NCBI GenBank assembly: GCA_964035545.1
Contig: OZ037773.1
Coordinates: 5,485,751-5,549,750 of the forward strand
Direction: 5' to 3'
DNA length: 64,000 nucleotides
Source of the DNA: Bugula neritina
Taxonomy: Eukaryota; Animalia; Bryozoa
Below are positions 25,866-62,800 of the stretch, piece by piece. The translations under genes were made by a program, and so were the position numbers. Each line of letters begins with the position of its first letter. The stretch's first letter is position 1. The notes under the pieces were generated by a model. The model did not search any database, was not told the DNA's origin, and saw only the letters and a program-made list of their open reading frames with translations.

Positions 25866-28800
25866 TCACATTAGTTTATAGACAAGAGAAAACAATCCCA
25901 CAACTGAGCACACTAAATACAAACTAGCTGGACTCCTAGCTCCACTATTTGGCGTATCTTGAGGGCAGGAGTTACCTTGAGATACTGGTGGGTCTGGGTA
26001 AGACTTGGGAGATATCGGTACAAGGACATTCTAAAACAGACAGACACCCTGTGTGTAGTTCACATTGCCAAATAAAAAATTGAGTTCTAGATTGAGTTCA
26101 GAGAGCAATTGTGACCAACAAAAACATTGGTCAAAATAGAAAACCTCTACTCAGTGCTGCAAAATTTTAGTCACAAATTTTTATTGGGTATGGTAAATAA
26201 CTGTTTCATATTTAGCAGGTTATGCAATGTCTTCATTTATTGGACAGTGCCTTCATCGTATTACCCAACTTGATTGGACAGAAAGCATAGTCTGCCTTTA
26301 CTTTTCTGTAACTAAACCAATGGATTCCAGTATAGTACGACAAAAATGCTGCCTTGCTTTATTTTTGTGTGCCGGTATTTGCTCATCCAAATGCTGACAA
26401 GCATGAGTTGCATGTACGGGATTCTATCACTGCATTTGCATAGTTTGCTAAAAAATCAGTACTTATGCTCATGGAAGAATCTAAAGACTAACTCTAGTTT
26501 AGCTCATAGAGTCTATCATAGTTTTTATTGAGTTGTTATTGATTATTGATAATTGGTTATTGATCTAGCTTTTGCTGACTCAATAAACATACTATGAACT
26601 CATCATATAGTTTACCGGGTAATCAACGTGAAAGGAAATTTTTCTGCAACCAGAGTAGTGATCAGTCTCATAGTAACTTCTTTGTAGAACCAGAGTGTCT
26701 TCTTTGGACCAGTTTGGTACCTCCTCTAGCAGCTTGATGTTATCCTGGATAGTGCTGCAAAAATACCATATATGGTGATAATGTAACACCAGCCATGGTA
26801 TAGTGGTTAAAGAGCTGGTTTATCATGACATAAGTGGTGAAGTGTTCTCTTGTGATTGAGGTAAGTTTGAGAGACCTGCTGGGGCTCTTTAGCTTGAGCA
26901 ATAACTTTTACAGTTCCAGAAAATGCTCTCTTTTAATACTTTTATGCAGCTTCAAAAATTAAGGTTTGTCAACTGCTTGCCAAAAGACACAAACAAAAAA
27001 AAGCAAAAAATATTGCTAAAAATTTTCCTATCTGGGTAACAGGTTCTCTATTTAATATTGCAACCCCTAATAGTTGAGCATATTTAACTGTCTTGTCCTT
27101 GCCTTAAACATCTTGATAGGATATTTGCATTAAATGAACCACGGTCAATTGTTAGAAAGTGCCTGTTAAGAGACGATCTAATTTCAGCACATAGCCTCAT
27201 AAAGTATTAAATCTCTCCTGCAACCCATATGGATTAAATGATTAATCCTGACCTGCTAGTGTTAAAACCCCATCTCTGATAAATAGGATCAGTTTGGTTG
27301 ATATTAATGCCAGTATAAGATCCACACGTGGTAACATGCTGCTTGGGATAATAATTGAGAAAAGCTAGACACATTTCATCTGTTGACGGCTCTCCTCCCT
27401 AAGATATAGCAAACTATACTCAGATCTGCATAAACCATTACAAAACTAACCATAGAGTGTAAATTCATATAGAAAACGTGTGAAAGCATACACTCTGACA
27501 TTCTAGCTTTTAGTTTTTACAAGGGTTCACAGATGTGTATAAATTATTACAGAACCATCCTCACTAAATTAAAGTTTGCCAAAACCAAAAAGTCGGCTTC
27601 TAGTGTTCTCTTGTATCGGCATATATGTAGAGAAATTGAATTGACAAACCTTCTAGTAACACAGCACAAAGGTATAAAACAATAGTGGCTAATAGCACTT
27701 GAGTATATAATTAGTAAGTTACTATAAGTATATGTTATGTTTTATAAATTATATTGTATTATATTATATTATATTGCTATACTAATTAACATTGCTTTAT
27801 TATTCTGAATGATCAAGATCTCACATCTACTTACATAGGTGAAGCTGTTGCGGGAAGGGTCTGTGTAAGTACATGTGACCTTCAATGTGTCCCCCTGGAA
27901 AATATCCATAATATAAGTTTTAGATAAAAATAGCAAGAATAATATTAACTTGCATTACATTAGCAAGACATGGCTATTGTGTTGCCCCACACCATTTCCC
28001 TATTGCATATATTACAACTGTTATTACTATCTGATCAAAAGCAAGATGCATTTTATATAGGCTATACAAAAATTTCGTTTGAATCAGATGATTTTTAATG
28101 TACCGATAGCCATGCATATTTTATTGTCTACACCTTATAAAAACTCATGCAAGTTTATAGTAACCATTCCTGTGAGACAACTCCTGATGGAAGGGTTTTT
28201 TGTTAAATCAGGCTAAGGACTTATTCAGATGAGGCACAGGGGCAATTATGACTGGATGCTCTTCTTAACATCACCAATGGCCTTTGTCTGGGTTCGAACC
28301 CATGACTTACTAAGCATAAACACTCTAACCCCTAGACCACGGCTGCTCCCTTATCTATGCCCTATGGCTTTTGCAAATTCATTTTGAAGCAGCCCTAATA
28401 ATTATATATTACTAATTTATTGCTGCATTATTTATGTGTATATTTCATAATGCAATGTTAAAGCAAACAATGAGTCATGTGGCGTAGTGTGAGCATAACA
28501 TAAAATAACAAGTTTTAATAATTTATGAAAATCATTGCAATTTGACACATACAATTTTTTGTTGATATCCTACTTACAGGTAAAAGCTTTTTGGGTACAG
28601 GAAGTAGTCGGTTTTCCTGATAATTGAAATCATAAGAGTTGTCTTCCGCCAGCACTTCACTTTGGCTGCCATCTTTACTGTACCAGTCTAGTTTAATTTT
28701 CGCTCCGAGAAGGTGGGAGTGTAGAAGATAACCAAACACAGTTACACCATCATCTGGTATCCACTAATGAATAGAATTACTCATTCAACTGGTATATGTA

Positions 28801-31800
28801 TAACTAATAGTCTGTTTGGCATGAGATTTTAACTACAGCTCAGTAGTATATGGCTGTATTTTTATGAATGATCGTAAGTAAACGACCCACTCTTGTTTGT
28901 ATTGCAATAAATTATGCAAGTACAAAATGTACAAATGAGAGTATTTGTAAATGAAAGAGCTTTTTAAACAAATATATATAATATATAATATATGATATAA
29001 AATATACAATATATAATATACAATATATATTATATAATATCCAGTATAATAGTATATTGTAATCATAAATTTATATTTTCCTTCTGCTCTGCTACAATAA
29101 AAGCTGAAGATAATGCAATCACCATAGGATTACTCTTGAAGTCAACTAAAAGTTAGTTTGATTATTGAATGAAAAAAAGAGTAAAAAATTATTATATATA
29201 CTGAGTTTTATCAACTAACTTTATTTTTAGAGATGATCAGCAAAGATTGAATTGGCACTATGTATCAAATATCACAAACTTTTAGCTCATAAATTCGTTT
29301 CTCTCTCCAACTCATGCAAGTTGTAATCTAGTGTAAAAGCATCAACATTTATACAATTTCAATTAAAATTAAATAGATTAAACTTTAAACCTATAATAAA
29401 AACTGTTTAGCACCTTAACTATGATGCAATTTATTAAGAACTGATGGTTATTTTTTACATTTTGCCATATTAAAGCTCAGATAATCTCTAAGAACATATA
29501 TAACAGGAAATCTAAATAGTGTGGAACAAACCTGTTCTGTGCAGCTTGTGTGACAGATAGAAATATGTTCAAAATTATCTGGCTTTGGAGGTACAATAAT
29601 GCCCCAAACGTTCCCTGCTGCGAAAGTTCCGGAGTCTTGCTCTCTTAACTTGGAGGTATAACTAACCCTGAGCCCTGAAGAGTCTACCCATGCTACAAAA
29701 CCACATAAGTGTTATATTTTAAAAATTTCTAACAGCTAAATTAGTAATTAGGAAAGATTAGAGTTTTATTAGTTGGCTTCATGATGAACTCTCTAAGTCT
29801 GACCTTGCCAGATCTCACCAAAGTACCAGCTAACAAGCATGAACTTATTTTGGGACATATCAAAGCTATACTTTCAAGCCTAATACCAAATTAATACAAC
29901 ACAACCAAAAAGACACAACGATTTGAATGGCATAAACTTGGATTGCACCTGCTCAACAAAAGATTGCATACCTATAAGCTTTGAGTTGAAGAATTTTCTT
30001 AAAAAAAGAAGCAAAAAAGTGAGTTTTTTTGACAAAAAGCAGTAAAACATTATGTAAGATTTTATGATTATATGACATCGCAGCTTTTGTAGAGTCAAAA
30101 AGTTGTGTAATAGCAATTTGCACATCTTGCAAGTGTAGACAGCAAGAGTCTACCTAGTTTAAGTATAATGACTCTGTATGATAAACCTACTATCCAACAT
30201 TCGTGGGTTGTCATAGTGCATCTCAGTCATGTAATAATCAGGGCTGGAACTACCATTACCACCAAATGGTACACCAGTGTGAATGGGCCAATAAAATTTC
30301 TACAATTGGAACAAAACTGGTTAACAAATGACGGCAAAGAAGGAAACTTAGATATCTGAACCGACTATGCTCTCACTAGAATATATATCGTTCAGCCAAA
30401 ATTATAAGCAAATTTTAGTTTATGCAGTTTTCTCAAAGCATATTAAGGTTGTTATAAATAATGCAATAAAAACGCTAAGAGTTCTATAATTTGTAAGGAC
30501 GTGTATGCGTATCGGAATAGTCATTCTTACAGAACCTCCGATGGCCCAGGCATATTCTATGTTAAAGCAAGAAGATGCAAATTCCGGCATTTCGGGGGGT
30601 GTTGCATATACCCTCCGTCTTGTTGTTGTTTCTCAGATGTTCCTTGTCTACTCCCCAGCAAGCAAAGAGCACTATATGGTGTACCAGTGCTTCATTTCCT
30701 TCGGTTATCAAGGGTTCAATCTAAACAATTCCAATTATAGAGGAGCAAAATTGAGATATAAATAGACCGGCTATCAGTCATCTGGCATGAACTTTCAAAG
30801 TCACATGTTTTGTAGCTTAATACTGGGCTAGATATCTGTTTGAAACAAAATTAGTATAGGTCTCTCACCAATAATTATTATTATGATGGTTTTGACACAC
30901 CAGATGGCATGAAATATTTTCATTATCAACACGCAAATTCCTCACCCTAAACAATCGATCTGAAAACTTGATGAGTTGGGCACATGTTTTAAAACTCAAT
31001 ACTAGCCTAGATTTGCAAAAAGAGTTGGGTGTTTAACAATATTGCTGTAATGGCTTTGACACGAATTCTTTATCTAAAAGCTCCCAATCGGGTGACAAAT
31101 TGGAACAGAAGTAGTCAGCTGACAAAGCTTACAACAAATGCTCAAACCAAACGCTGCCTGCTAATACAAACATAGTTCTCATTTCTGCAGTATAAATTAT
31201 TTACAAAAGATCAGGTGACTAGAATAAGAAGAGTAAAAGAACTTCAAATTGACTGTAATAAAGCAGTTTAATATCTAAAAGTCATTAGGTTTGTAACAAA
31301 TTAATTATCTCTATAAGTCTGATGGTCACCGTTTGAATGCTTCGAATACTAATATAGGATAAATATAACTTCACTGGGTTGAATATACATAATCTATTCA
31401 TTCTAACAGATTTGCTAGAAGTATTAAGTTGTGTATTCAGTTACTTTGGGAACTTATAAAGCTGTCCTCACTAAGTTTCTTACAGCTAAATAAGCACTAA
31501 TTTTAATACATTAAAGTGCTATGATATATTACACACAATTTTATCTTCAAACTTTATACACTTGTAACCTTAATAGTTGGTTCCACCTTTTTAGAGCAAC
31601 TTTGTAGTATTATAGTGCAGACTTTAAATTTTATTTTTTATAAACTCCATTTATTTTATAATAGGTTGTGTAAGCTAATTAAGACTGTTGATATGATTTC
31701 AGTGCATAAAAGTATTAATTTAAACAGTTGACTTACCGATAGGATATGGTGTTTAGAATCTAACTGTGGAGGGTCATGAAATGCACAGTAGTATGTAGTG

Positions 31801-34800
31801 TCTGTTGCTGGCACATGGTACTGGAACAGAAGATACATTTCTTTAAAAATCAAATAGTGATATCTGTATTGTTATATTACAATATTCTTGGATTGATATT
31901 ATATCTTTTACTTATGCAAGTAAAAGTGTATATATTTTGAAATAAAATATATAAATAATTTATACAAGTTAGATATGCAAACAACTTTAGTGCTATAACA
32001 AAATATGGATGCCAACCTTAGCAGCCCAGCAAAATGTATCAATAAAAAATTTTATATTTGTATTTCTTTAGAATACAAAACATGGGGTAGTAGAGTCTTT
32101 GGTGATTATTTCTTGAATCTTGATTGTACTCCAGTTTGCGCTTTTATGTGTTCATGAATTACTTTTTAGTAGTTAATTTCTAAAACTTTTCACTAAAAGC
32201 AACTATTTTGTGTCGGTCCCTGAGCATGAGTTGAAAACTTTTTCAATGTTGACGCTGATTTTGATAGCAGTGTATCGTTTTCATTTAAAAATTTTATATC
32301 GAAATCAGTACTGTTCAAGAAAGTTTTTAAAACATACAAATATGAAGGTTAGAAATAATATTGCTAGGCTGAACAACAGAAAGGCTCCATAAAGAAAAAC
32401 AATGTAAAGTTTAAAAGCAAAGCTTTACTTTGCTGCCTCCAATCAATTGATCTTAACCCTACAGCACAATGCTTGGTATTTTATTAGCTAGTTTAAAATA
32501 TTACATTTGGAAAGTGTTTTGGAGCAAAACAGATTATGTGCACTATGCTGAAGTAAGAGTTTAAACTATTTTTGTGAAAATTTAGGTTCTAAAAACACTT
32601 GCTTTCAACATAACTTTAAATTTTGATCAAATGTAGTGCAGGGCTAATTATGATCAGATGTATCTGCTGGTCTGTCATCAAGGGTCGTACTAAAGTTTGA
32701 TCTTCTGGCAAAGTTGAATTAATGCAATGCTAGACTATTGGTCTGCTTTTTTAAAATATTTATGCATAGAACTTGACAATGTAGCATAAGCTTGTTGCTG
32801 AGGAGAATGTTTGCTCATCAGTGAATGCGTGAAGCTGCAGAATGGAAAGAGCAGAACTTCAAAAACTGCACCAGTATGTACCAGGTGTAACTTACATTAG
32901 TGACAGTCATATCAAAATACTGCAAATCCTCTGGTAGACTCTCATCTGGAATCTTAGAAGCTGTATCCAGGAGGTAAACACTCTTCACACCTCTGTTGGT
33001 AGCTCCGTGGTAGTTTAAGGAAGAGAGTTTATTGTTAGTAGGATCAGTGTCTCCAAATGCATAAATCAACTTTGTAGTAGAAGTCTGAAGTGTATAACAT
33101 ATTATTAATGCAAAGAGTGTTGCCTAAATAGGAATCGATTTGTTCTGTAAATGCCTAAAAGTTATAATATAATTTTTAGTTAGCTCAAAGCTTGAATTAG
33201 AAACATTGATTTTATTTAAACGACAATTTTATTCAAATGAAATAGAATCTGCACTAGATATTCTATATAACTTTTTTTTTGTATTACAGTTTGTTAACCT
33301 CATAAGTCAACAATAAATATCAACATAATGGGGCAAAAAAGGGTGGTTGAAATATATGCAGTTAGTTTACTCAACAGAGGTGCGCCAAAAGGCTAAAAAC
33401 TAAAAAAAGGACTGCAGTAGCATTACCTCAACTATCTGTTACTCACCATAATGGCTGCATCTTCACCATCACATGTGTTGATTTTCCTTTTGAAGATAAC
33501 AGATGTGACACCATTGACTTCTGAAGCAGAAACTAAGCTGACATCTTGAGAGGAATCAACCAGAGGTAACTGGTTTCCTGTTGCATGCATATCCTGGAAC
33601 ATTACGTCAATATCACGTTAGAAAATACTTTTAAAAATAGGTAGAAATTTTAAAAAAATTACCTCTTCATTGAATTCAATAAAAAATAAGAGAGAGACTA
33701 AAAAGTCAAAGGTGTACAAAAGGAAGAAACTGCAAGAGCAGCTGAGTTTACACAACATGGCAATGCAGTCAGTTACTGTACCATGATATGGCTGGTGCCT
33801 TCTGAGTCAATCCAAGCTACTATCAGGTCTGCACCTGTCATTGCACCATTAGGGGAGAATCCAAGACCCACCCAACCTTCTGTGCGGACAGATATCTACA
33901 AAGTGTATAGGCCATGTTATATTCTCAAAATGTTATGAGAATAATGGGTGGAATGTGCGATGAGTTTAAATTTGTATACAACCTGGTTTTGTAAAATATT
34001 CTGTTAAATGCTTGCTCTTGCGTTTACTTAACTTAAGCATTCATTGCTGATCGCTCTTTTATAGTCAAAGTTAGTTTAGCTTGACATGTACCACATGACT
34101 AAATTTATCCTTAATAATAATAATTTGAATGGCTAATATGAATTTAGGGTTGCTTCAGTATGTTACATTAAAAAGGTTCAGAAATTTAGTTCATATTATA
34201 AAAGCTGTCATCAATGTTGGCTACTGACACTACATATTGAACTGTAAAATTAGGGGACTGTGCCATTAAAGTCAAAGATCAACACACGGAGCCAAATGTT
34301 GGATTGTTTGAGTTACTCTTAGCCAATGGTATTTTATCCAAATACCTGCAGCTATTTTTCAAACATTTCAAAAGTTGAATTTTGTTTGAAAACTTCAAAG
34401 ATCGCAATCTAAAAATTTGAGATTTCTGGATTTCAAGAAACTAAAATGTATTCATGCAGTCATGCTTTGAGACTAAATATTTAGGAGGAACTATTATAAT
34501 TGAGTATAAATGTTAAAACATGTTAAAAAATTCTTTGTGAATTCGTTTTGAAATGGGGTAGTCATAGTGTACAAATTTCATAGCAATATTACACTAACAC
34601 AAAAATGCACTGTCAAAGGTCTGTCAAGTGTTGCCATACAAGAATAATATTATTTTAGCTACTTTGATGTAATATAGATCAATTGGTCAGTGTCTTACTA
34701 CCATGCCGAGAATAATTAAAATGATATCGTCAGCATTTTTAGCATAGCTGGTAGCAAAAAAATATTAGTTTTTTTTGTGAATCAGAATAGCATTTAGACT

Positions 34801-35005
34801 GAAAAGACATCATCCTTCTACTTTCCACTCTTCATTAACTGCTGTTTTAGTCACATACCGTAAATATTAGTTCACTATCGGGAGTTGTCTCATCAAATGA
34901 CCAAGAGACATTAAACTTTCCTCCAGCAGCTAAAGAGGCGAAAAGATCTTCTGTATGCACAAAGTTACAGAATAGCATCAAAATAAGGAGTGGTACCACC
35001 TCCAT
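25866..35005 (-). pseudogene. MOXD1: DBH-like monooxygenase (MOXD1-like) copy A; single +1 frameshift in coding exon 6 (pseudogene, null allele or homopolymer sequencing error)
   Basis: Exons 35005-34859, 33895-33782, 33593-33447, 33084-32896, 31820-31737, 30720-30531 (190 nt vs 189 in paralogs), 30299-30191, 29692-29532, 28763-28578, 27894-27835, 27398-27253, 26754-26616, 26030-25866 (TGA). G6 at 30594-30599 (G5 in copy B) shifts the frame to a TAA at 30564-30562. All other exons are open and copper ligands VHH, HYDNP, HSH and EMC are retained. Confidence 0.8.
28141..28350 (-). mobile_element. tRNA-derived SINE, family 1, copy 3 (copy A intron 9)
   Basis: Full-length match to the family unit on the minus strand. 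Confidence 0.88.
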
Positions 35006-36877
35006 AGTAACCAGACTACAACAAACAACTTACGATGTTCAAAACGTGCAATTTACGAAATGCCTTTGTGTATCATACCAACAGAAAATTCTCCAATTAC
35101 CAACCTACCAAAGTTAGAACTGAAAATCCATATTTAACAACAACACTAATTTATTAAAGTTGTGAGAAAATTCCTTCCAAAGTCATCAAAAAAGTTGCTA
35201 ATGCTAGAACACACTTTGTCATAATATTGTAAATGGATAATGGTGGTAATGTTTTATACTCTGGCCTGTAATACCAATTACTATATGTTAATATAGCTAC
35301 CGTTCAGCTGTAATAGCTTTTGAAAGCCTAGGCTTTTTTAAGCAGCAGCTATTGATACACAAAAATGCAAACTGTGTGTAATTCTAAAATTATTTATTAC
35401 ATGTATACTAAAAAGTTCATATATATAATTAAGACTCTTTGAAATAACATGATCAAGCTGCAACTTGGATTATTAGTATAGCTATAGTATAAAAGTAAAC
35501 CCATTGCACAAACTTTATAATATTCATACCTGAAACTTGTAATTCAAAGTTTTTCTCTACTATTACTACTGCACTGCTTGGCTTCCTCAATAGCTACAAC
35601 CTGCACTGACAGACTACATGTGGATTAGCACACTTTGCACTCTTGTAAAATTGTATTTAGACTATCAAACCTTAGTCAAAGCATGTGGGACATCACGTGT
35701 AACTTTCTCTTCAAATCATTGCAACATTCAACATTTGTTTATCTCTTGATATCTGGCAGTGCTATAAGGAGCCAAAGGCTATGATAAAGTAGGACTTGTA
35801 ATAAGTTGACCTTAGAAAATAGAAAACTGGCTATTTTGAGATCTGGTTATGTTGGTTTACTTGTCACTATTGTGATGTCACAAAGCCGTCATTTACTGTG
35901 TGCCACTTACAATGTAGAATCCCAGCTATGACCTGTAATCACAATACACCCAGGCACTTTAAATATTATAATACTACTGATGCTATCTATGCAAGTGTCA
36001 CATGGTATTCTGGTATTTATAAATTGCTAAAGCTCAGCAATGTGATACACACACCACACACGCACACGAAAAAACACACACTCACAACTACAGTGCCATC
36101 TGATCAGTTTAGGATTTTTTCAAGTCAAACTATGTTATGTGTTTTTACCCGATCAAAGAAATTTATTTCAACTGCCTTGTAATCAGATAAGTAAGTGCTC
36201 TTGTCATCAAATCACTTGAACACTTTTTAAAATGAGAAACTAGCTTACATTATATATAGAATATGAATGTGCATTATAGAGCATAATATTATATTTTGTT
36301 ATTTAAGATCATAAAAATATATAGAAAATAGCTTAGATTACCAAGCACCCAGCAGTAGTGTTGATTATACAGGGAATAATATAGATATTTATCACAAAAA
36401 TTATAGAATGCAGACATTTGATATATCAGGTAAATTATAGAGCATAAAACATAGATGTAGATGCAAATTGTAGGGTTTAGAAAATGATAGAACATGACAG
36501 CTCTGCCAATCAAAATAATAAAGAAATTGATAGTAAAGTGCAAATTTTCCACAAACTTGTACCAGAAGTATATTATATACAATGCTAATGCTTTCTAACA
36601 TTCAACCCCATCAGCAAATCAAATTAAACTCTGCTGATAGTGTAAAAGCCTTTGCGGTAAATGTATCCTATCAGTTATAAAATCTAATTAAAATATTTTC
36701 TACTAATGCAAGCTGATTATATTTATAGAAATAGACTGCTACTAATGCAAAAATAACTGTAAAAATATATAAGCTGATTATATTAATTATGTGCTATAGA
36801 AATTAGACCTGCATTATTATTTATTATATATGCGATTACAACGAAGTGATATTAGAATTGCCTGCCCTTACTGTGAG

Positions 36878-45304: not shown

Positions 45305-45877
45305 TATCTTATAAAGTGATTTATAGATCATACAAGTTTGCAAAGCAAATATATCACACAAACTATAGAATATGCAAAACGAATGCATCATGTACCTTAA
45401 CAAACACAGAATTGCAACTCCACTAACCCAATTAATAAAATAGCAGATTTATGTTCATGTGAAATATATGCAAGCCTGTCTCAATAGCATGTTTGGTGAT
45501 ATAACAATTAAATTTTATTAAGTGTTTTTATTAACTCATTTTATCACCAAAATAACTTGATTTCTGTTGAAAGTGTGAACAAATTTATAGAAATTTTATT
45601 ATTTTTCATATTATAATAAGCAAAACATAATGCAAATACTCTCTATAATTTACCCGATCAAATTTATATAGAAATACACTCTAATGCAAAAAATATAATT
45701 GTAAAAGCATCTGTAAAAGCATCAATGTATAACAAAAAATCAGCTTTTTTGGTAAAAATATTAATTGTAAAAAACTATGGCATATTGTAATATTAGGTGT
45801 TATAGAAATTAGACATATACTGCTACGTATTTATTATCAAAAAGTAATATCAGAGTTGTCTGCCCTATTACTGTGAG

Positions 45878-48800: not shown

Positions 48801-51800
48801 TACATGTAAGCTTCAATGAGTCTCCCTAGAAATTGTCAACAACATAAAGTTTGTTACAGAAATAGCAATTTTATTAACTAATATATTGCATGCAAACTGT
48901 CATGACCTATGGTTAATGCATATGTACCATTATCGTTGCTTCTTTTATTATGGCAATAGCATAGATTATAAGCAGTGTCCTGCTACTTTATATCATATGA
49001 ATTTTACAAAACTGCCTTGAAAAATTTTTAAATACCGTATCCCTAAATTACTACTGCATTACTTATGGTGCATGTTTTATATTCAATATAATAATTATAT
49101 TAACATAGTGCAAGCCCTACCAAATTCATAATAATAAAATCACTTTACAGCTGAAAGGATATAGTTTTTAATTTTTAATGTACTTACAGGTAAAAGTTTC
49201 TTAGGCACGAGAAGCAGTCGGTTTTCCTGATAATTGAAGTCATAAGAGTTGTCTTCTGCCAGTACCTCACTTTGGCTGCCATCTTTACTGTACCAGTCGA
49301 GTTTAATTTTAGCTCCGAGAAGATGGGTGTGTAGAAGATAACCGAACACAGTTACACCATCATCTGGTATCCACTGATAAATATATAATAAACATTTTAG
49401 TTCTGTGAATCCTTTGGAACATTTAAAAATTCAAAGCTTTTCCACTTTTTAATGGACTGAGATTTCTATAGAACTTTTTTTCAAGGATAAACAGCAGAAG
49501 AAGGGAATGAAACTTTTATGACATTATTGCAATGTATGTTATTAAATCAAATTAAAACTTTTGGTCCCATGAATTTGTTTTAACCTTTAAACCATATAGG
49601 CTGCAATTTAGTATAAACCATAGAAATCTACATCATTTAAACAAAAATAAAATTAATTTGATTAAAGTAGGTTGTAGAATGTAGAATATGTACAGCTGCT
49701 TTTTCAAGTTATTATTAAGATGAGGTTGTGTTTGAGTTTGCTACAAGCTGCTAAATAAAAGCATGAATCCCTGCTGACCCGATATTAGATAACATCTAAG
49801 CTCATTCAGCAGCAAATGAATATTTATCTAAAAATTAAGACACACCTGCTCAGTACAGCTTGTGTGACATATGGAAACATATTCAAAATTCTCTGGTTTT
49901 GGAGGTACAATCAAGCCATCAACTGTTCCCACTTGAACAGTGCCTGCATCCTGCTCTCTTAAATTGGAGGTATAGGTTATCCTGAGTCCAGAAGAGTCTA
50001 CCCATGCTACAAAACCACACAGATCACACTAGCTAAGAAAAAGATTGCAAACTTGTGAGGCAGATCCTTTGCTCTGGAGCTTAGAATGTTCTCAAAGAGA
50101 AGTAAGTTAGGTTCATGAGTCAAGTTGCCACTCACAAGAAACGGCAAAGCAATAAACCTATTGTTGGGGCTTTCCTTAATGAACGATAGCTTTTCACATA
50201 TCATCTCAGCTATATTACGCTTTTCCACTTTCAGTATAGCTAATACACAAAAGCTAATTTTTTTACTACTATCAAAAAACCCAGCAGTTTTCACTTATCC
50301 ACACTTGCATCTCACCCTTGTACTTGCAACTGATAACTCATGAGATAACCTTTTTTACGCATTGCTTTTCTTTCAGTCTGCTATAATAAATATATATTTC
50401 TCTAACTTAAAACACAACACCTACTGTCCAACAGTTGGGGGTTGTCATAGTGAGTCTCTAGCAGGTAATAATCAGGGCTGGAGCCATTACTACCACCGAA
50501 TGATACACCAGTGTGAGCAGGCCAATAAAACTTCTAAAAGATATAATGGTCCAGTGCGGATAGCAAATGGCCACAAGTTATACAAAGCAATGATGAACCA
50601 ATATAATTATATTGAGAATTTGGCATCTTCAGCTTAAAAATCAGTTTGTATTTTATGCAAATGATTTAGAAGAACTCATAAGTTATAAAGGTGCGATGAA
50701 AATGCAAAGATCTTTAAAAATACATACAGGAACAAGAAGTTTATTCTATTGGAATTTTTGATAGCAACAATCTAAGTATAAACTGTCATGCTTACTGAGC
50801 CTCCTACGGCCCAAGCATACTCCATGTTAAAGCAAGAAGATGCAAATTCTGGCATCTCAGGGGTGTCACAGATACCCTCCGTCTTGTTGTTGTTTCTCAG
50901 ATGTTTCTTGTCTACTCCCCAGCAAGCAAAGAACACCATATGGTGTACCAGTGCTTCATTTCCTTCGGTTATCAAAGGTTCAATCTAAACAATTCAAAAT
51001 AGTTCATTACGATCTGGACATGAATAGACTGGCTATCAGCCAGCTTACTAGCAACTTCAAGGTCACATGTAACTTAATTCTGGTTAAGATATTTATCTAG
51101 AAGCATAATGAAAAGGGTGTTCACCAATATTTTTACAATGATTTCGACATCAGATGGCATGCAAATACTTCTGCCATTGACATATTTTAATTGGGCAAAA
51201 GTTGGCACAAAATTAGTCAGCTGACAAAAGCTGCAGCAAACTCTTAAACCAAATGCTCTTTACTGTCTACTGCTTATAACAGACCTGGCAGTAAGATAAA
51301 ACAACTGTACAAACTCTATGTTTACTTTGATTAAGGATTTTCTAAGCTTGCAAGTTATCTTCATAATGCCGTAATGGTTGTGAAAAAAAGTTAGACTTGA
51401 TCTCTACCTAATAACTGGAAGTTAGTTATTTGCAATTGCAATACATTGCTTTCACTGAGATTTCCAACAGAACTGAAAGACTTAAAAGTATTTAACTTTA
51501 ACTTACTGATAGGATGTGGTGTTTAGAGTCCAATTCTGGAGGATCATGGAATGAACAGTAGTATGTAGTATCTGTTGCTGGCACATGGTACTGAAACAGT
51601 AGATACTGGGGATAACTTTACTTCATTACAATATTACTTTAATGATAGACATGATGATATGGGTTGTGAGTGGATGGATTTAAACAAGGTACATGCATAT
51701 CCTATTATAAGGGTTATAATAAAATGAAGAGGATATATCATTATACCAAAACATATATGCAGTCGCATTGAGGAGCAGCCGTGGTCTAGGGGGTCAGAGC

Positions 51801-53439
51801 ATTGGCTTAGCAAATATAAAGTCTTGGGTTGAAACCTCAGTAAAGACCATCGGCAGTGTTAGGAAGAGCACCGGTCATTATTGCTCCTGTGCCATATTTG
51901 AATAAGACCTTAGCCCACTTTACCAAACCCCTTTTCTATCAGGGGTTTTCACAGAGACAGTGACTATAAACTTGCGTAGGTTGTTATATATGCAGTTTCA
52001 TTGAAATCTTAGAAGTAGCAAGAGTAGCAATAGACTTTACTTACATCTGTGACTGTCAGATCAAAATACTGCAAATCATCTGGCAGACTATCATCTGGAA
52101 TCTTAGAAGCTGTATCGAGGAGGTAAACACTCTTCACACCTCTGTTGGTAGCTCCGTGGTAGTTTAAGGAAGAGAGCACATTGTTGGTAGGATCAGTGTC
52201 TCCAAATGCATAAATCAATCTGGTAGTAGAGGTCTGGAGTATATAGCACATCATTACTCCAGTAGTTGTCATTAAAAATATAGATAAACCATGTTTGAAT
52301 CTTAAAAAGTACAGATACAACTGCCGGTTTTTGAAGAGCTTACTTAGAACATTGTTTTGCAAAAATGAAATGCATTAAATAAATTTAAGTTTTTGCTTTA
52401 TCAGCTCATAAGTATAAAAGAGATAAAAGGAGTAATTGAGGTTTCAGTTAAGAAGTTTTAGTGTACCAGAACAGAAGAAGTGATTGAAATATGCAGTTGT
52501 AGCTTTGCACATCGCTTACTCAGCATGATAATGCTGGAACGATTTAAGTACTAATGACAACGAGGTGACTGCAGTAACATTACCTCAACTATCTGTTACT
52601 CACCATAATGACTGCATCTTCACCATCACATGTGTTGATTTTCCTGTTGAAAGTAACAGATGTGACACCATTGACTTCTGAAGCAGAAACTAAGCTGACA
52701 TCTTGAGAGGAATCAATCAGAGGTAGCTGATTTCCTGTTGCATGCATATCCTGGAACATTACGTCAATCTTGTGATGTTGAATAGGTACTTAGAAAAAAG
52801 AAGAGAAAGACTAAAAAGTCAAAGGTGTACAAAAGGAAGAAACTGCAAGAGCAGCTGAATTTATACAGCATGGCTATGCAATCAGTTACTGTACCATGAG
52901 ATGGCTGGTGCCTTCTGAGTCAATCCAGGCTACAATCAGGTCCGCACCTGTCATTGCACCATTAGGAGAGAATCCAAGACCCACCCAACCTTCTGTGTGA
53001 GCAGATATCTACAAAGTGCATAGGCTATAGCTACATTATCAAATAGTCCTGAGAATTGTAGATGACAACAACTCAATATATACGTGTGCGGGTGTGTGTG
53101 TGTGTGTGTGCGGGTGTGTGTGCTTGCGTGTGCGTTTGTGTTTGCGCATGCGCTTGTGCTGTCGCGTAGGTTTGCGTGTATGTTCGTGTGTTTGTGTGTG
53201 CTCGTGTAGGTGGGTGGATGTGCGTGTGAGTGTTGTGTTTGTGTACATGAATGGGTTTCCGTGTGTGTGTAGTGGAATAATACGAAACTCACTGTGAATA
53301 CAATCTCACTATCAGGAGTTGTATCACCAAAAGACCAAGAGACATTGAATTTTCCTCCAGCAGCTAAAGATGCTGAAAGATCTTCTGTGCTCACAAAGTT
53401 ACAAAGTAACATCAAAATAAAGAGTGGTGCCGTCTCCAT
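45878..53439 (-). CDS. MOXD1: DBH-like monooxygenase (MOXD1-like) copy C, intact, 610 aa
   Basis: Exons 53439-53293, 53008-52895, 52750-52604, 52233-52045, 51590-51507, 50984-50796, 50533-50425, 50006-49846, 49373-49188, 48825-48766, 48180-48035, 47580-47445 (one codon shorter than in A/B), 46042-45878. Open frame; all CuH and CuM ligands present. Confidence 0.93.
46069..46281 (-). mobile_element. tRNA-derived SINE, family 1, copy 6 (copy C intron 12)
   Basis: Family match; flanked by ctgtatgta/ctgtgtgta duplication; empty site in copy A (cagacaccctgtgtgtagttc at ~26041). Confidence 0.88.
51773..51985 (+). mobile_element. tRNA-derived SINE, family 1, copy 7 (copy C intron 4)
   Basis: Family match; paralogous insertion site shared with copy 5. 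Confidence 0.87.
53084..53270. repeat. Degenerate (GT)n in copy C intron 1
   Basis: Longer version of the tract in B; only a short TGTGTGTGC seed in D. Confidence 0.88.
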
Positions 53440-56400
53440 AGCAACCAGACTACAACAAACATTAAACATGCAATGTACTACTAATTTATACTATGTAAAG
53501 AACTAAATTTCATTTGTATAGAGCAAGGCTATTTTTTTAACATCTATTATAGAAATAAAGTATAAATTAGTGAAATTGACAGAAAGTTTGCTAACCATTC
53601 CTTTTAATACTATTAAAACTATTTTATAACACTCATTGATCGAAGTAATGAGAAAGACCCTGACAAATGCAGCAATAAATTTGGTACTGCTAGAAAGCAT
53701 TGGAGTCACATTCGTAAATAATTGCTAAAATACTTTATACTCTAGCTTGTCACACCTATCTGTCAGCTAATAACTACAATACAGCTGTGTAATAGCTCCT
53801 GCAACTTTGTAGCATGAGAAATTGTCTGACTATGAAATAAAGAAACCTTTCACGTTTGGCATATTTGGATTGCAAATCTGCCAAACATAAAACCTAAAAC
53901 TCTAAACCAAAGTTACGCATAAATCTACATCTCTGAACAGGCTAGAGCTGTTAAAGACTTGAAGCCAACACATGAAATATATCTTGAATTAAGATTTAGT
54001 AGCTGCTGCCTGTGTTAGTATAGCAGTAGTTTATTAGTAGCTTCAGTTCCTAAGCTTTGTAACTATTATACCTGTGAATATACCTCTGGATATACCCGTG
54101 ATTGCCTAAAATGTTAGTCCAAAGGCTTTTCTTCACTACTACTGACTCTAGTGTTTACGGTACTTAGAAGTTGAACGCTGCACTTGCAGTAGTAATCTAA
54201 TATCTGAAACAGCACAGCTTGGAGTGTATAGACTATATCACAACTTAGCCAAAGCTTGTGTGACATCATGTCCAACTTTTCTTTAGAGTAATTGCCGCAT
54301 TTTATATTAATTTTTATACTCATTGAAAGCTGACAGTAATAAAGAGCCAAAGGCTATGATGAAACAGACTACGTTTGACAACGTGACCTTTAACCTGATT
54401 GTGTCAACTGACCATTAATTGGTTTACTTGTCATTATTGTAATGTCTCAAGCCACTTGCTGATATTACTGTTAAGATTACTTCAACTATAGCCATGATGA
54501 TTAAAGACAGTTGCAAAAAGCCCAGGCACCTGAAATGATATTACTCTTGCTGTCTGTGTGTCACGTGATATCTTATATCCTATAAAGTGATTTATAAATC
54601 ATACCTAAGTAATGCAAATATATCACACAAACTATAGAATATACAAAATGAATGCATCATGCACCTTAACAAACACAGAATTTCAACTCCACTAACCAAG
54701 TTAATAAAATAGCAGATTTATGCACAATGCGAAATATATACAAACCTGTCTCAATAGTATGTTTTGTGACATAACAATTAATATTTTATTAAGTGTTTCT
54801 ATCAACTTCTTTTATCATCAAAATAAATTGAGTTTTTTTAAAAAGTGTGAAAAAAGTTTATAGAAGATTTATTATATTTTATATTATACTAAACAAAATA
54901 TAATTTGCATACTCTCTATAATTTTACTGATGAAGTTTATATATAAACAAACTCTCCCTAATGCGAAAAATATAACTATAGAAACATCTATAAAAATCAC
55001 ATAATGAATGTATAAAAAAAATCAGCTTTCTTGGTTGAAATAATAATTGGAAACATCTATGGCATATTATAATATTAGGTGTTATAAAAATAAAATATAC
55101 ACTGCTATTTATTATGCATTATCAAATAGTAATATCAGAGTTGTCTGCCCTACTACTGTGAGTCACATTAGTTTATAGACAAGAGAAAACAATCCCACAA
55201 CTGAGTACACTAAATACAAACTAGCTGAACTCTTAGCTCCACTATTTGGTGTATCTTGAAGACAGGAGTTACCTTGAGATACTGGTGGATCTGGGAAAGA
55301 CTTGGGAGATATTGGTACGAAGACATTCTAAAACAGACAGACAGACTGTGTGTAGTTCATAGCTAACACTTGTGAATGGGCTGATGTCAGACTTTATTGA
55401 TGAGGGTTTGAGTTTAAATATGTTTGTTTTTGAACGTAATTTAAAAAACATATCTAAACATGTATTAGAGCTTCAGTGATAAAATCAAGATCTAGCATTT
55501 GGTGATCAGTAAATCTAGCTGGCGACTAGCTAACAAATGAGTGTTGAAGTGGATGAAGAGGGGGGGCTATAGTCACTGAATGGTACTAAGGCTGAAACTA
55601 CTGTGCAAGAGACGGCAAAACAAGTGAGAATATTTTACAAATTTTACAAATATAAACAATTAACAGTCAAAAGCTAAGATGTATTTCTGTCACCAGTTAT
55701 TGGTTATTGATACATAGTTTTTCCCACAAATATATGATTGAAGAAATACATAGTTTACCCAAATGTAAGTATTTATTATTAATATAGTTTACCGGGTAAT
55801 TAATGTGAAATGACACTTTAGTACAGAAAGAGTAGTGATCAGTCTCGTAGTAACTTCTCTGTAGAGCCAAAGAGTCTTCTTTAGACCAGTTTGCTACTTC
55901 CAACAGATTGATGTTATCCCAGTTAGTGCTGCAACAAGACCATGTATGACGCGTTATAATAAGTTGGTATATTATATATAATATCCTCAGCTGCATGCTA
56001 GAAACATGAGACACAAACATAGTGGGGAGATAGTGACTAAAAGTTGTTGCTGATTTTTGACAGACAAAATATAGCTATTTGCTTTTATGAGTTTTTTGTT
56101 TGAGTCGAGAATCACTTATACATGACTTTTCTGATGTTTTTATTAGATGTTAGGGGTACTCAATAAATGACCCTGATAAACTTTAATGGTCATCATAAAA
56201 GTAATTGTTGCAGGTATTAGTTATTGCATATATGTAGTGCTGGTATTGCAAATTAGAAACTAAGTTATGTGGGGAGGCACTCTTGAAACTGTATTTAACT
56301 GGTAGCAAAAATAGTTCCAAGTATTAGACAAATGTAACTAGCCAGGCCTGCTTTAATTTCAAGATGGTATATATTTTTGTAATTTATATGAATTAAATTG

Positions 56401-57579
56401 TTACTCTGACCTGCTAGTGTTGAAACCCCATCTCTGGTAAAGAGGATCAGTTTGGTTGATATTGATGCCGGTATAAGATCCACATGTGGAGATTTGCTGC
56501 TTGGGATAATAGTTGAGAAAAACCAAACACATTTCATCTGTTGACGGCTCTCCTCCCTAAAATATACACTGACTTACATGATGGTCAGTAGATCTGTATA
56601 AACCATTACACAGATTTCTACAAAATGCAAATTCATGCAAGAAACGTGTAAAAGCATTCACTCTGACATTCTTATGGCTTTTGGCTTTTGTAACAGCACA
56701 ACGATAAAGAAATAAGAACTTTGGAGAATAATTATTACATTGCTGAATTTATAAATTTGCCGTTATAACCTTTCAGTATTTAACACAGCACAAAGGTATA
56801 CAGCAATAATAGCGCATGAGTATAATCTGTAAGTTGCTAAGAGTATATTAGTATAAATTATAATGTGTATATATCAGTGTGTTGATTAATATCCTTATTC
56901 TGGATGGTAAACATCTCACATCTACTTACATAAGTAAATCTGTCTCGGGAAGAATCTGTGTAAGTGCATGTAACCTTCAGCGTGTCTCCCTGGAAAATAT
57001 ATCCACAATATAAGTTTTAGAACAGAAATTGCATGAGCAAGGCAAATGGCATATCAGTAATTTATTAAAATATTACTTATTGTGATATAGTAACTTAGTG
57101 CAATCAATTTGAAAATTTCAATAATTATGAAAGCACTTTACAGCTCAATGGATATACTTTTTAATTATTAATCTACTTACAGGTAAAAGCTTTTTGGGTA
57201 CAGGAAGTAGTCGATTTTCCTGATAATTGAAATCATAAGAGTTGTCTTCTGCCAGTACTTCACTTTGGCTGCCATCTTTACTGTACCAGTCTAGTTTAAC
57301 TTTGGCTCCAAGGAGATGGGCGTGTAGAAGATAACCAAATACAGTTACACCATCATCTGGTATCCACTGATAAATAGAATGACTCATTCAACTAGTATGT
57401 ATAACTAATCTGTTTTCACATGACATTCTTCCTATATAGCTCAGCAGTATGTATACATATCTATGAATAATAATACATATGTGAATTATATTAGCTTACT
57501 TCAGCATATGCAATGAAAGAATGCACGCGCAGGAAAAAAGGCGTTTATTAAAGGTCGGGTCTTACAGGATATTAACTGA

Positions 57580-57806
57580 GGGAGCAGCTGTCGTCTAGAG
57601 GTTAGAGCGTTTGCCTATAGTAAGCACGAAGTCATGGGTTCGAGCCCGGACAAAGGCCATTGGTGATGTTAGGAAGAGCATCCAGTCATAATTGCTCCTG
57701 CATGTGCCTCATCTTAATAAGTCCTTAGCCCGCTTTAACAAAAACCCCTTCCATAAGGGATTTTCTCTCAGGGATGATGACTATAAACTATAAACTATAA
57801 ACTTGC
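57580..57806 (+). mobile_element. tRNA-derived SINE, family 1, copy 8 (copy D intron 8)
   Basis: Family match; 3' CTATAAA repeated three times; TSD ACAGGATATTAA on both sides. Confidence 0.9.
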
Positions 57807-58138
57807 TGAATGTGACAGGATATTAAATAACATCCAAGCATATTCAGCAATAAAAAAATGTTTATCTAGAAATCAAAACACACCTGTTCAGTACAGCTTG
57901 TGTGACATATGGAAATATATTCGAAATTCTCTGGTTTTGGAGGTACAATCAAGCCATCAACTGTTCCCACTTGAACAGTGCCTGCATCCTGCTCTCTTAA
58001 CTTGGAGGTATAGGTTACCCTGAGTCCTGAAGAGTCTACCCATGCTACAAAACCACACAGATCACATTAGCTAAGAAAAAGACGGCAAACATGTGAAACA
58101 TATCTTTTGCTCTAGAGTCTAGATCATCCCAGCTAGAC

Positions 58139-58200
58139 TAGGGTTTTCCAACCTTTTTAGAGGGAGGGCCACTGAAATGGAATATTTTAGCAGCAACCAA
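58139..58200 (+). mobile_element. Possible hAT terminal fragment in copy D intron 7
   Basis: TAGGGTTTTCCAACCTTTT...GGGCCA resembles the hAT end seen at 17552 (CAGGGGTGTCCAACCTTTT...GAGGGCCA); absent from the same intron in A-C. No partner end found. Confidence 0.4.
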
Positions 58201-59174
58201 CGTTTGCAAAAAGTTAAGATTTAAGTTTTAGAACTTATAAAATCTACAGTCAGTAAAGGGGGTAAAAGAAGGTATGCTCAGAAATCCAGTCTTTATTTAC
58301 AAGAACCATCAATTAGCATTAAACCTACTGTCCAACAGTTGTGGGTTGTCCTAGTGCATTTGTAGCATATAGTAATCAGGGCTGGAATTATTGTTACCAC
58401 CAATTGGTACACCAGTGTGAGCAGGCTAATAAAACTTCTGAAATATGAAATAAAAAATGTAGATCTGAAAACCAAGTTAATAAAGATGGCAAAGCAAAAA
58501 CAATTAAACTTTGGCATCTAAACTGGCAATGTTTGATCTTTGGCTGGTAATACAGGTTTTGGTTCATTCAAATGTCTCAAAGCATCTCAAAATTTAGAAT
58601 AATGCAATAAAAATGCTGTAAGGCATATATATTTTTTAATATGAGAGTTGAGGTAAAAAATTGTTACTACTGAATTATTCAGTCATTCTTACAGAACCCC
58701 CGATGGCCCAGGCATATTCTACGTTATAGCAAGAAGATTCAAATTCTGGCATTTCCGGGGTGGCACAGATACCCTCCGTCTTGTTGTTGTTTCTCAGATG
58801 TTCCTTGTCTACTCCCCAACAAGCGTAGAACACCATATGGTGTACCAGTGCTTCATTTCCTTCGGTTATCAAAGGTTCAATCTAAACAATTGAAAACATG
58901 GGATCACAATCGTGGCATGAGTAGACTGACTAGCAACTCAAAGTCACATGTTTTTTGCAACTTAGTTCTGGTTTAGATTTAAAAACAATGTTGGCTGTTA
59001 AACAATATTGCCATAACAGTTTTGACACATGACTGCATGCAAATTCTTTATTTAAAAAACTTGTAATCGAGTGAAAATTTGGGACAAAAATAGTCAGTTG
59101 AGAAAAGTGTTAACCAATACTAAAAGCACAGTGTTGATTACTGCAGTATATTGTTTATACGTAACCAGATAAGA

Positions 59175-59388
59175 CCTCACACAAGTTTATAGTCGCCATC
59201 CTTGTGAGAAAACCCATGACAGAAAGGTTTTTTTGTTAAATTGGGCTATGAACTTATTTAGATGGGGCACAGGAGCAATTACGACTAGATGCTCTTCCTA
59301 ACATTACCAGTGACCTTTGTCGGAGTTCGAACCGAAGACTCCGTGTTCACTAAGCAAATGATCTAACCCCTAGACCACGGTTGCTCCC
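59175..59388 (-). mobile_element. tRNA-derived SINE, family 1, copy 9 (copy D intron 5)
   Basis: Family match on the minus strand. Confidence 0.87.
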
Positions 59389-59609
59389 TTTATACATTAT
59401 CAGATGGCAAAGATAAGAAAAACTTAAAGAATTTCAAATTGATTGTGATGAAATGTTTTCTATAAAAGACATCTGGTTTATATAAAAATTTGATAATCTC
59501 TAAGAATGTGAAAATAATCAACCTTCAGATACTAAAATATGATAACTATATATAACTTCAAGGAGGTGAATATCTATCCATTCTTAAATATACTATGAAT
59601 TGTAATGTA

Positions 59610-59826
59610 GGGAGCCGCACTAGTCTAGGGGTTGATGCTATAGCCTAGTAAGCGTGAATTCATGGGTTTGAGCTTGGGCAAAAGCCACTGGTGATGTTAG
59701 GAAGAGCATTCAGCCATAATTGCTCCTGTGCCTCATCTGAATTAGTCCTTAGCCTGATTTAACAAAAAATCCTTCCACCAGAGGTTTTCTCACAGGGATA
59801 GTGACTATAAACTTGCACGAGTTTTT
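59610..59826 (+). mobile_element. tRNA-derived SINE, family 1, copy 10 (copy D intron 5)
   Basis: Family match on the plus strand, head-to-head with copy 9 about 220 bp away. Confidence 0.87.
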
Positions 59827-62800
59827 GTATTGTTGTTTTAACAAATTCAAACACTTTCCTTACTAAGTTTTTAAGCTAAACAAGCACTACATCCAATAGA
59901 TATTATATACACAATCACATACTCAGATTTTATACACTTCTAGCTAGACAGTTGGCTCTACCTTTAACACAACCTAACTACCTCATAGGGCATATTTCGA
60001 ATTTTTCTCTGACAAACTTCATCTGTTATATAAGTTGCATATGCTAAGATTGTTAACAAAATTTAAATGCTTAAAAGTATTAAACTGTTAACTTACTGAT
60101 AAGATATGATGTTTAGAGTCCAACAGTGGAGGGTCATGAAATGCACAGTAGTATGTAGTATCTGTTGCTGGCACATGGTACTGAAACATAAAATACACTA
60201 AAATATAACTCAGATGAAGATAATTGTATTACTTCATTACAATATCACTTTCCTATAATAACATATAATTGCAAAATGTATGAATTTAAACTAGAGTACA
60301 TGTCTAATACAGTATAGTAACAAGTAAACATCATTATACAAAAACATATATTTTTTTTATTTATGACATAACTTTAGCAATCTAATGAAATGTTTTAATG
60401 CAAAGCATTATAGTTACAGTTATTTAGACTATAAAACATGTTAAGATAATCATTGGCAACTTAATTTCAAATTGAATTTTATAAAACCAATTAGTGGCTG
60501 CAGAATAACAAAATAGCATAATTTTAGATATTTCAAGAGCAAATCTAAATTTTACTTACATCTGTGACTGTCAGATCAAAATGCTGCAAATCATCTGGTA
60601 GACTCTCATCTGGAATCTTAGAAGCTGTATCCAGGAGGTAAACACTCTTCACACCTCTGTTGGTAGCTCCGTGATAGTTTAAGGAAGAGAGTACATTGTT
60701 AGTAGGATCAGTGTCTCCAAATGCATAAATCAATCTGGTAGTAGAGGTCTGGAGAACAAAATGCATAAAAACTGTAAATAAAAGCATTGTAAAAAGTACA
60801 GCCCCCATGGAAATCGAATTGAAGTTTTCTAACTTGCAAGCAGGCGTGCTCACCAAAGTGACTGCAATGATATGATATTACTTCAACTTTCCTGTACTCA
60901 CCATGATGACTGCATCTTCATTATCACATGTGTTGATTTTCCTTTTGAAGGTAACAGATGTGACACCATTGACTTCTGAAGCAGAAACTAAGCTGACATC
61001 TTGAGAGGAATCAACCAGAGGTAGCTGGTTTCCTGTCGCATGCATATCCTGGAACATTATGTCAACATCACTTTGTACAATCTTTCGACAATAAATACTA
61101 AGTATTATAAATTACATAAACTGCAAAAGCTGCAAACAGGGGCAAGAACAAAGGAAAGACCAAAAGGAAGAAAGAGCAAAACAAATTCTATGTGAAGGGA
61201 AAAAGTTAAAATAATCTTGCTAATCAGATTTGAATGACTATATAAACATGTTCAACACCAGAAAGTTACATGGGGTCACACATCTCAACTCAATTACTTT
61301 TATAGTTTATTATGGCAGCAATATCTTTATGCAAATCAAATGTAAGGAAGCCTTTATTTGATAATTAAAATGCTTGTTTGATGGAAAAGCATTGAGTTAT
61401 AGCTTTTAAGTACTAATTTGACTTTTTTTCAACGGTATCAACTTTATATGAACCAAATCAAAAATAAAATACAGAAAGATATGTTAATTGTATCTTAAGG
61501 TGCACAAGATCAGAAAAGATAAGAGAGGCGTGAATAGAGAGCAAAGAACTCCTGGAGCTATTTATGCAACACGGCTATGCAATCAGTTACTGTACCATGA
61601 GATGGCTGGTGCCTTCTGAGTCAATCCAGGCTACAATCAGATCTGCACCTGTCATTGCACCATTAGGAGAAAATCCAAGACCCACCCAACCTTCTGTGCG
61701 AGCAGATATCTACAAAGTGTATAGGCTATGGCTACATTATCAAATAGTCCTGAGAATTATAGATGACAACAACATGTGTGTGCAGTAGAATAATACAAAA
61801 CTCACTGTAAATACAATCTCACTATCTGCAGTTGTCTCACCAAATGACCAAGAGACATTGAATTTTCCTCCAGCAGCTAAAGATGCTGAAAGATCTTCTG
61901 TGCTCACAAAGTTACAAAGTAACATCAAGATAAAGAGTAGTGCCGTCTCCATAGCAACCAGACTACAATAAACAGATATGGTTTCATGCGCAATGAATTA
62001 AAACATACAATGTACTATACTATAATTTACACTGAAAATCATATGTATACAGCAAGACTGGCTTTTTTTCATAATATCGATAATAGAAATAAAATATAAA
62101 TTAGTAAAACTGACAGAAAGTTTTAACCATTCCTTTTGATACTATTAAAACTATTTTATAACAACACTAATTTCATGAAGTAGTAGAAAGTCCCTGACAA
62201 ATCCAGTAAAAAGCTTTGTATTGCTAGAGAGTATTGGAATCACAGTTATAAATGATTACTAAAATACTTTATACTATATAGGCTGTCATACCTATCTGCA
62301 AGCTAATTATAGCTACAATGGTTCAGCTGTAATAGCTCCTGCAACTTTGTAGCATGAGAAATTGTCTGACTGAAATAAAGAAATCTCAATCCAAATTTGT
62401 CAAACATGAAACCTTAAACTTTAAACCAAAACTAAGCAAAGTTCTACTTTTTTGAACAGCTGAGGCTGTTAATTACTTGAAGCCAACACGTGAAATATAT
62501 TTTGAATTAAGATTTAGTAGCTGCAGCCTGTGTTAGTATAGCAGTAGTTTATTAGTATAGCTACAGTTCATAAGCTTTGTAACTATTATACCTGTAAATA
62601 TCCCTGTGATTGCCTAAAGTGTTAGTTCGAAGGCTTTTCTTTACTATCACTGACTATAGTGTTTGCCTCATTTAAAGGTTGAACCCTGCACTTGCAGTAG
62701 TAATCTAATATCTGAAACAGCACAGCTTGCAGTGTATAGACTATATCGAACCTTGGCCAAAGCTAGTGTGACATCGTGTCTAACACCCCTTTAGAATTAT

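Follow-up and report, generated by a model that had tools for sequence, protein, structure and literature searches.

A tandem array of predicted DBH-like copper monooxygenase genes, two of them apparently intact, in the bryozoan Bugula neritina

Four closely related genes stand in tandem in the genome of the bryozoan Bugula neritina, and they resemble those encoding dopamine beta-hydroxylase (DBH) as well as MOXD1-type copper monooxygenases. The stretch analyzed here, referred to as the window, comprises 64,000 nucleotides of contig OZ037773.1 (positions 5,485,751 to 5,549,750 of the forward strand; GCA_964035545.1), and positions are those of the window unless another record is named. It belongs to the Darwin Tree of Life assembly tzBugNeri2.1, which spans 216.00 Mb in 320 scaffolds plus the mitochondrion (N50 of 24.8 Mb) and was built at 132x HiFi coverage to a quality value (QV) of 53.7, with purge_dups applied. 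The window is AT-rich (~33% G+C) and holds no long open reading frames (ORFs), as expected for intron-rich animal DNA.

A self-blastn comparison revealed that the array lies on the minus strand and consists of four head-to-tail units of 8.5-10.9 kb each, all of them colinear, which we call A (~25.8-36.75 kb), B (36.75-45.8 kb), C (45.8-55.1 kb), and D (55.1-63.6 kb). Units B and C align at 78-83% identity across nearly their entire length, and the alignment of A with the other units is chiefly exonic, with additional patches in introns and spacers. Every unit contains 13 sharply conserved blocks that are open on the minus strand only, and four-way alignment of each block resolved them into 13 exons per copy, all with GT-AG borders. 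Only exons 6 and 12 vary in length among the copies: exon 6 has 190 nt in A and 189 nt in B, C, and D, and exon 12 has 139 nt in copies A and B against 136 nt in copies C and D. The preliminary description of this DNA had listed four head-to-tail units, a common 13-exon architecture, and introns and spacers that can still be aligned, all of which our analysis confirms; the limits it set for the array, 25866 and 61952, are exact, being the final base of the A stop codon and the A of the ATG of copy D.

In order of window position, and all on the minus strand, the array consists of copy A (25866..35005), the most diverged copy, with a +1 frameshift in exon 6; copy B (36878..44189), with an uninterrupted frame of 611 amino acids over its 13 exons; copy C (45878..53439), likewise uninterrupted, with 610 amino acids; and copy D (55163..61952), which has the same exon model. 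The spacers are also homologous to one another. They lie between B and A (35006..36877), between C and B (44190..45877; the segment 43941-46069 matches 53185-55354 at 83%), and between D and C (53440..55162), and a spacer-homologous flank upstream of D (61953..63607; 44013-45837 matches 61776-63607 at 76%) marks the end of the array. A tblastn search covering the remaining window and the next 10 kb on its right found no fifth copy, nor any decayed fifth unit in positions 1-25,800.

The ends of the genes are conserved as well. An AATAAA signal follows the stop codon by 42-52 nt in all four copies, and the acceptor-like sequence TTGTTGTAG occurs just before each start codon, 12 nt upstream of the ATG (35017, 44201, 53451, and 61964). 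Since this acceptor-like sequence is common to all four, a non-coding 5' exon is possible. In addition, B and C have an in-frame ATG 30 nt upstream of the start (44190-44219 and 53440-53469) that is without counterpart in A and D. P0200, the public protein model of the counterpart of B in a second assembly (see below), is 10 residues longer than B at the N-terminus, consistent with use of the upstream ATG.

To characterize the encoded proteins, single exons, an alignment of exon 6, or public proteins served as queries in external searches, and the spliced window proteins were used only in local dN/dS (nonsynonymous to synonymous divergence) estimates, BLAST comparisons, and trees. Compared with Pfam exon by exon, copy B matches DOMON (PF03351) positions 26-111 in exons 2-3, PF01082 (Cu2_monooxygen) positions 9-128 in exons 5-7, and PF03712 (Cu2_monoox_C) positions 2-148 in exons 8, 9, and 11, with the profile positions running colinear with the exons throughout. 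Exon 1 of B (44043..44189) supplies the start codon, whose context is kept in all four copies, and a hydrophobic, signal-peptide-like N-terminus (hydropathy windows 1-18). Exon 6 (41608..41796; PF01082 at 47.5 bits) covers the middle of the CuH domain, carries its His-His pair (ALVHHM), and aligns with human DBH (4zel) over that motif; exon 7 (41228..41336; PF01082 positions 97-128) carries the third CuH histidine (THYDNP). The His-x-His of the CuM centre (HTHLLG) lies in exon 9 (40252..40437; PF03712 at 43.3 bits), where it aligns with HTHLTG of DBH, and the CuM methionine (DEMC) lies in exon 11 (39103..39248; PF03712 positions 120-148), where it aligns with EEMC. Exon 13 (36878..37042) encodes small residues, a 17-residue hydrophobic end resembling a glycosylphosphatidylinositol (GPI) signal or a membrane anchor, and the stop codon, as judged from alignment and hydropathy.

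All six predicted copper ligands (HH 241-242, H318, H395/H397, and M470) are kept in the four copies and align with His262/263/333 and His412/414/Met487 of DBH when P0196, the public counterpart of copy C, is compared with 4zel (DBH numbering of ligands and disulfides, and its dimerisation domain, follow PMC4846438). The mature protein has 12 cysteines, kept in every copy, which is the number required by the six intramolecular pairs of DBH. Ten of them align with DBH C154, C232, C269, C283, C295, C390, C394, C466, C488, and C503 in the same comparison, and for the last two (547 and 579) the pairing with C565 and C596 follows only from their number and sequence order. Exon 6 alone retrieves human DBH (4zel) from the PDB, and P0196 scores 275 bits against it over residues 25-493 (~470 residues) versus ~56 bits against PHM. 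This resemblance to a DBH of solved structure is sufficient to establish the fold. The colinear domains and the complete CuH and CuM ligand sets bear out the earlier assignment to the copper monooxygenase family. Hydropathy analysis uncovered only two hydrophobic segments, residues 1-18 and 592-611; small residues come before the second, which in this respect resembles a GPI-attachment signal or an anchor at the C-terminus. It is plausible from this combination of signal peptide and hydrophobic tail that the intact proteins enter the secretory pathway, and the surface or secretory location previously suggested for them is plausible to the same degree. Taken as a whole, the locus is very probably a tandem array of four paralogous genes for DBH-like type II copper, ascorbate-dependent monooxygenases that expanded by birth and death and in which B and C are intact.

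Although the preliminary description counted four genes, two of the copies, A and D, appear to be disabled. Copy A has one extra C in a run of C at 30594-30599 (exon 6), which shifts the frame at codon 268 and leads to a stop at codon 280. In copy D, TAG replaces Trp294 (58426-58428) and Tyr319 (58351-58353), both in exon 7. We compared these positions with nine related sequences, namely the other window copies, the five units of a second B. neritina assembly (denoted by primes, with an additional unit X), and one metagenome contig (L048). None of the nine carries either lesion, and all nine read W and Y at the TAG positions of D; the orthologue A' has no extra base and is annotated as an intact 611-residue product. 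Since the related copies are free of these lesions and since A and D, when set against the other copies, give a dN/dS (0.17-0.22) similar to the value for B against C (0.14-0.15), the lesions appear to be recent and specific to this genome, and A and D are probable pseudogenes or null alleles.

L048 comes from the Joint Genome Institute (JGI) sample 3300003318. It was considered as the D orthologue and rejected, because its identity to D' in the draft assembly is only 91%, unlike the B-type contigs of the same sample, which reach 99.3-99.8% identity to B'. This contig thus represents either a sixth, D-like unit or a third lineage in the sample. That the stops of D are private to this genome still holds, since D' and L048 both lack them. 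D' and X carry frameshifts of their own, which we leave uninterpreted in a draft assembled from PacBio RS-II reads with Canu and a single Pilon round.

It could be argued that all four copies are functional and that the A frameshift and the D stops are assembly errors or null alleles of one haplotype. In keeping with this, the A lesion is a single extra C within a C-run, both copies retain all copper ligands, A' and D' of the other lineage are without these lesions, and we regard the dN/dS of A and D as no higher than that between intact copies. Nevertheless, we consider it unlikely, given that the coverage and QV of the assembly correspond to ~1 error per 230 kb, which makes an error within a 1.8-kb coding sequence improbable, and that in D two substitutions to TAG arose independently within a single exon, which is not a signature of sequencing error.

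With the aim of placing the array among its relatives, the whole genome (216,009,554 bp in 321 records) was scanned with PF01082. On the chromosome of the window, the scan detected only these four copies. Elsewhere it found a three-copy tandem array with fewer introns (C4:5.715-5.732 Mb), a tandem pair (C3:32.007-32.025 Mb) and a single copy (C3:26.625 Mb), these being the paralogues closest to the array of the window, a locus at C8:6.075-6.081 Mb that may be a gene of the DBH or tyramine beta-hydroxylase (TBH) type, and several more distant loci. The array copies are 86-92% identical to each other in amino acid sequence and at most 57% identical to any other paralogue; the nearest other loci are 45-57% identical to B.

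Beyond this genome, an exon 6 profile compared with 1.84 billion representatives yielded 410 matches. The nearest full-length match is the Watersipora subatra "DBH-like monooxygenase protein 1," 47% identical to B, and nearly all named matches carry MOXD1-type names, including platypus MOXD1. Two proteins deposited in GenBank and UniProt under the name "moxd1 [Bugula neritina]" (A0A7J7JBR2 and A0A7J7JB84; P0196 and P0200) are 87-91% identical to B and C, with C 91% identical to P0196. Both sit in the colinear array of the draft assembly, where P0196 is the protein of C' and P0200 that of B', and their names are automatic and no proof of orthology. Owing to its length window, a word search with exon 6 of B returned only four exon-sized fragments, which led to contigs and were of no use for classification.

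A maximum-likelihood tree of 61 proteins unites the array and its counterparts with 100/100 support, so that the four copies belong to one clade. The sister of this clade is a four-gene Watersipora clade (93/60), and both fall, together with the C3 paralogues, within a 100/100 clade of bryozoan sequences only. The C4 array forms a separate long branch, and the C8 locus groups with a priapulid "DBH-like" protein. Vertebrate MOXD1 is a 100/100 clade whose backbone to the bryozoan clade this tree leaves unresolved, DBH, TBH, and MOXD2 references not being among its sequences. The bit scores of P0196 are 290-335 for vertebrate MOXD1 proteins and 275 for human DBH. From these slightly better scores and the automatic names, "MOXD1-type" appears a reasonable label, as the preliminary description had it, rather than a demonstrated orthology.

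These relationships also bear on whether the genes might be bryozoan neurotransmitter enzymes, that is, duplicated TBH/DBH orthologues making octopamine or noradrenaline. The best match of solved structure is indeed human DBH, at 275 bits over 470 residues and with a complete active site, and the catalytic core is common to enzymes that act on phenylethylamines. We nonetheless find this origin quite improbable. Vertebrate MOXD1 scores above DBH, the nearest named relatives are all MOXD1-type, and it is the C8 locus that groups with a DBH-like-named protein. Moreover, the DBH match ends before the dimerisation domain, to which we found no detectable similarity (the 4zel alignment stops at query residue 493), and residues 494-611 contain no CxC motif that could supply a pair of the Cys528/Cys530 type. 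The clade is also bryozoan-specific and multi-copy, with frequent gene death, which would be unusual for a single essential biosynthetic enzyme.

Having considered function, we turn to the age and history of the array. Coding sequences differ by 7-12% between copies and introns by far more, and repeat insertions differ as well. Synonymous divergence (dS) is ~0.24-0.25 among B, C, and D and 0.32-0.39 for A against the rest, and dN/dS between copies is about 0.15-0.22. The copies arose by successive duplications of the unit and have been kept under purifying selection. A 2020 draft genome of B. neritina from Virginia (GCA_010799875.2) holds five head-to-tail units on contig VXIV02002702.1, in the order D'-C'-X-B'-A', and these units (record 17548-66368) are colinear with the window at 78-87% identity. 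The 5' part of the extra unit X is of the B/C type and its 3' part of the A type.

B and B' (contig L045, P0200) are 93% identical in exons and 82-87% in introns, and the best match in this genome to a foreign B-type contig is copy B, at 82-87%. The dS between B and B' is 0.24, compared with 0.28 for B versus C when the same set of exons is used. A tree built from exons 4-13 pairs B with B' (93%), and the next copy to join them is C (95%). A nucleotide tree of exons 4-7 with a C3 paralogue as the outgroup was discarded, as it was saturated (outgroup branch of 4.3) and uninformative for rooting. Because positional counterparts D', C', B', and A' stand in the same order in the second assembly, the duplications predate the split of two deeply diverged B. 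neritina lineages, and copy number has changed since then. The array evolves by birth and death. "Young" accordingly holds only relative to the other paralogues; the "recent, lineage-specific" expansion of the preliminary description goes too far, since the copies are older than a split at dS ~0.24 and Watersipora has a parallel cluster.

That the array is a haplotype or assembly artefact, in which mis-assembly duplicated one or two real genes, is extremely improbable: although assemblies classically go wrong at tandem near-repeats, the extent of divergence between copies, their different repeat insertions, the use of purge_dups, the finding that copy B itself is the best match in this genome to the foreign B-type contig, and the distinct D, C, B, and A counterparts found in the same order in the independent PacBio/Illumina assembly from Virginia and in Illumina metagenome contigs all contradict it.

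The two assemblies labelled Bugula neritina differ at this locus by a dS of ~0.24, by 13-22% in non-coding sequence, and by five units versus four. This divergence fits the known cryptic-species complex and is of species level. An intron of B' (L045:4770-6106) has a 1.3-kb insertion that is absent from copy B of the window. The chromosomes of the present genome carry dozens of dispersed copies of this insertion (69-79% identity), so it is presumably a transposable element.

Several points weigh against our interpretation of the locus as a birth-and-death array with two intact enzyme genes. The frameshift of A is a one-base homopolymer change, the commonest residual error of long-read assemblies, and the lesion of A or of D could be heterozygous. 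C' is barely closer to C than to B and groups with B/B' in the protein tree, so the units of the two arrays are no longer clear one-to-one orthologues, perhaps as a result of gene conversion or unequal crossing-over; the marginal proximity of C' to C suggests some exchange between units. Enzyme activity, copper binding, anchor type, and substrate are all read from sequence. Finally, the protein collection contained no transcript-derived close relative of the array copies (~335-1,070 amino acids).

The remaining features of the window are repeats and short ORFs. An interspersed repeat of ~210 bp was found by self-blastn in ten copies that are 72-88% alike, in both orientations and mostly in introns and spacers of the array (467-673, 10224-10443, 28140-28350, 38112-38320, 42583-42750, 46069-46282, 51772-51977, 57579-57789, 59176-59389, and 59609-59825), and its insertions differ from unit to unit. 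In the part of the window before the array (1-25,800), ten ORFs matched no Pfam family and no gene was recognized. Positions 1773-2214 hold a degenerate (GTA)n/15-mer tandem repeat within a minus-strand ORF of 169 codons without a Pfam match, and positions 13337-13426 hold a (GAGT)22 microsatellite.

Among known systems, MOXD1 (monooxygenase X) has a signal peptide and a C-terminal hydrophobic segment for membrane association, and in vertebrates it is single-copy. The array proteins share with it the succession of signal peptide, DOMON, CuH, CuM, and C-terminal hydrophobic segment, as well as a length of ~610 amino acids. Identity to vertebrate MOXD1 is ~33%, and the margin of its scores over DBH is small (see above). 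Unlike vertebrate MOXD1, the genes described here form a multi-copy array with dead members. The substrate of MOXD1 is not established (PMC11979771). Human DBH (4ZEL) has the same DOMON, CuH, and CuM core, with the six copper ligands and the ten aligned disulfide cysteines, at an identity of about one-third, whereas the array proteins lack similarity to its dimerisation domain and the Cys528/Cys530 pair and have a hydrophobic C-terminal tail instead.

A birth-and-death pattern similar to that of the Bugula array is seen in the duplicates of vertebrate MOXD2, which is described as a membrane-bound enzyme whose substrate is not known. MOXD2 arose within vertebrates, so the array genes are not its orthologues, and it underwent repeated parallel tandem duplication in several lineages (PMC11979771); frequent inactivation across lineages is likewise reported. 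The olfactory expression of MOXD2 has no known counterpart in the Bugula array. Lineage-specific, multi-copy expansions of the same family have arisen independently in other phyla, including the 13 DBH-like monooxygenase copies of the deep-sea glass scallop, expressed in the digestive gland, and the multi-copy expansion reported for the springtail Folsomia, and expression and stress-response data exist for those animals.

Closer to Bugula, Watersipora subatra has three same-strand genes of the sister clade within ~130 kb (OY755162.1, 36.19-36.32 Mb; XP_067938987.1 and two neighbours), so Bugula is not alone in its tandem arrangement. The Watersipora genes are 45-49% identical to the array and, at 25-33 kb each, three to four times longer. 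Given that copies group by species, the expansions in Bugula and Watersipora are either independent or homogenised.

Our literature search found no papers on these genes in Bugula, and neither B. neritina genome paper discusses them. The undescribed or novel system envisaged in the preliminary description nevertheless finds no support, since public records already list two orthologues under the name moxd1 [Bugula neritina] and expansions in other invertebrates are published. The array is an unexceptional expansion within an enzyme family already known, whose chemistry, tendency to expand in invertebrates, and gene annotation are already public, and it adds no new category. As we envisage their action, the intact B and C proteins would enter the secretory pathway and be tethered to a membrane through either a GPI anchor or a helix at the C-terminus, and with two coppers, O2, and a reductant such as ascorbate they would hydroxylate a C-H bond in a small substrate of amine-like or peptide nature.

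A more far-reaching proposal, which we offer tentatively and think rather unlikely to hold as a whole, is that cheilostomes may have a clade of DBH-like monooxygenases peculiar to them, extracellular and tethered to the membrane, which expanded in tandem independently in Bugula and Watersipora with fast turnover. Rather than make a neurotransmitter, these enzymes could act at the larval or zooid surface, where they would hydroxylate small molecules of exogenous or symbiont origin or amines that serve as settlement cues. The fast turnover, with a chimeric unit gained and A and D recently lost, would be the pattern of a changing chemical environment. No animal has yet provided an established substrate for a MOXD-type enzyme, and two intact close paralogues with adjoining natural knock-outs and a sister cluster in Watersipora would be convenient for comparative expression and substrate screening. 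In addition, the array is a clean example of birth-and-death evolution and documents the species-level divergence of two assemblies that both bear the name B. neritina.

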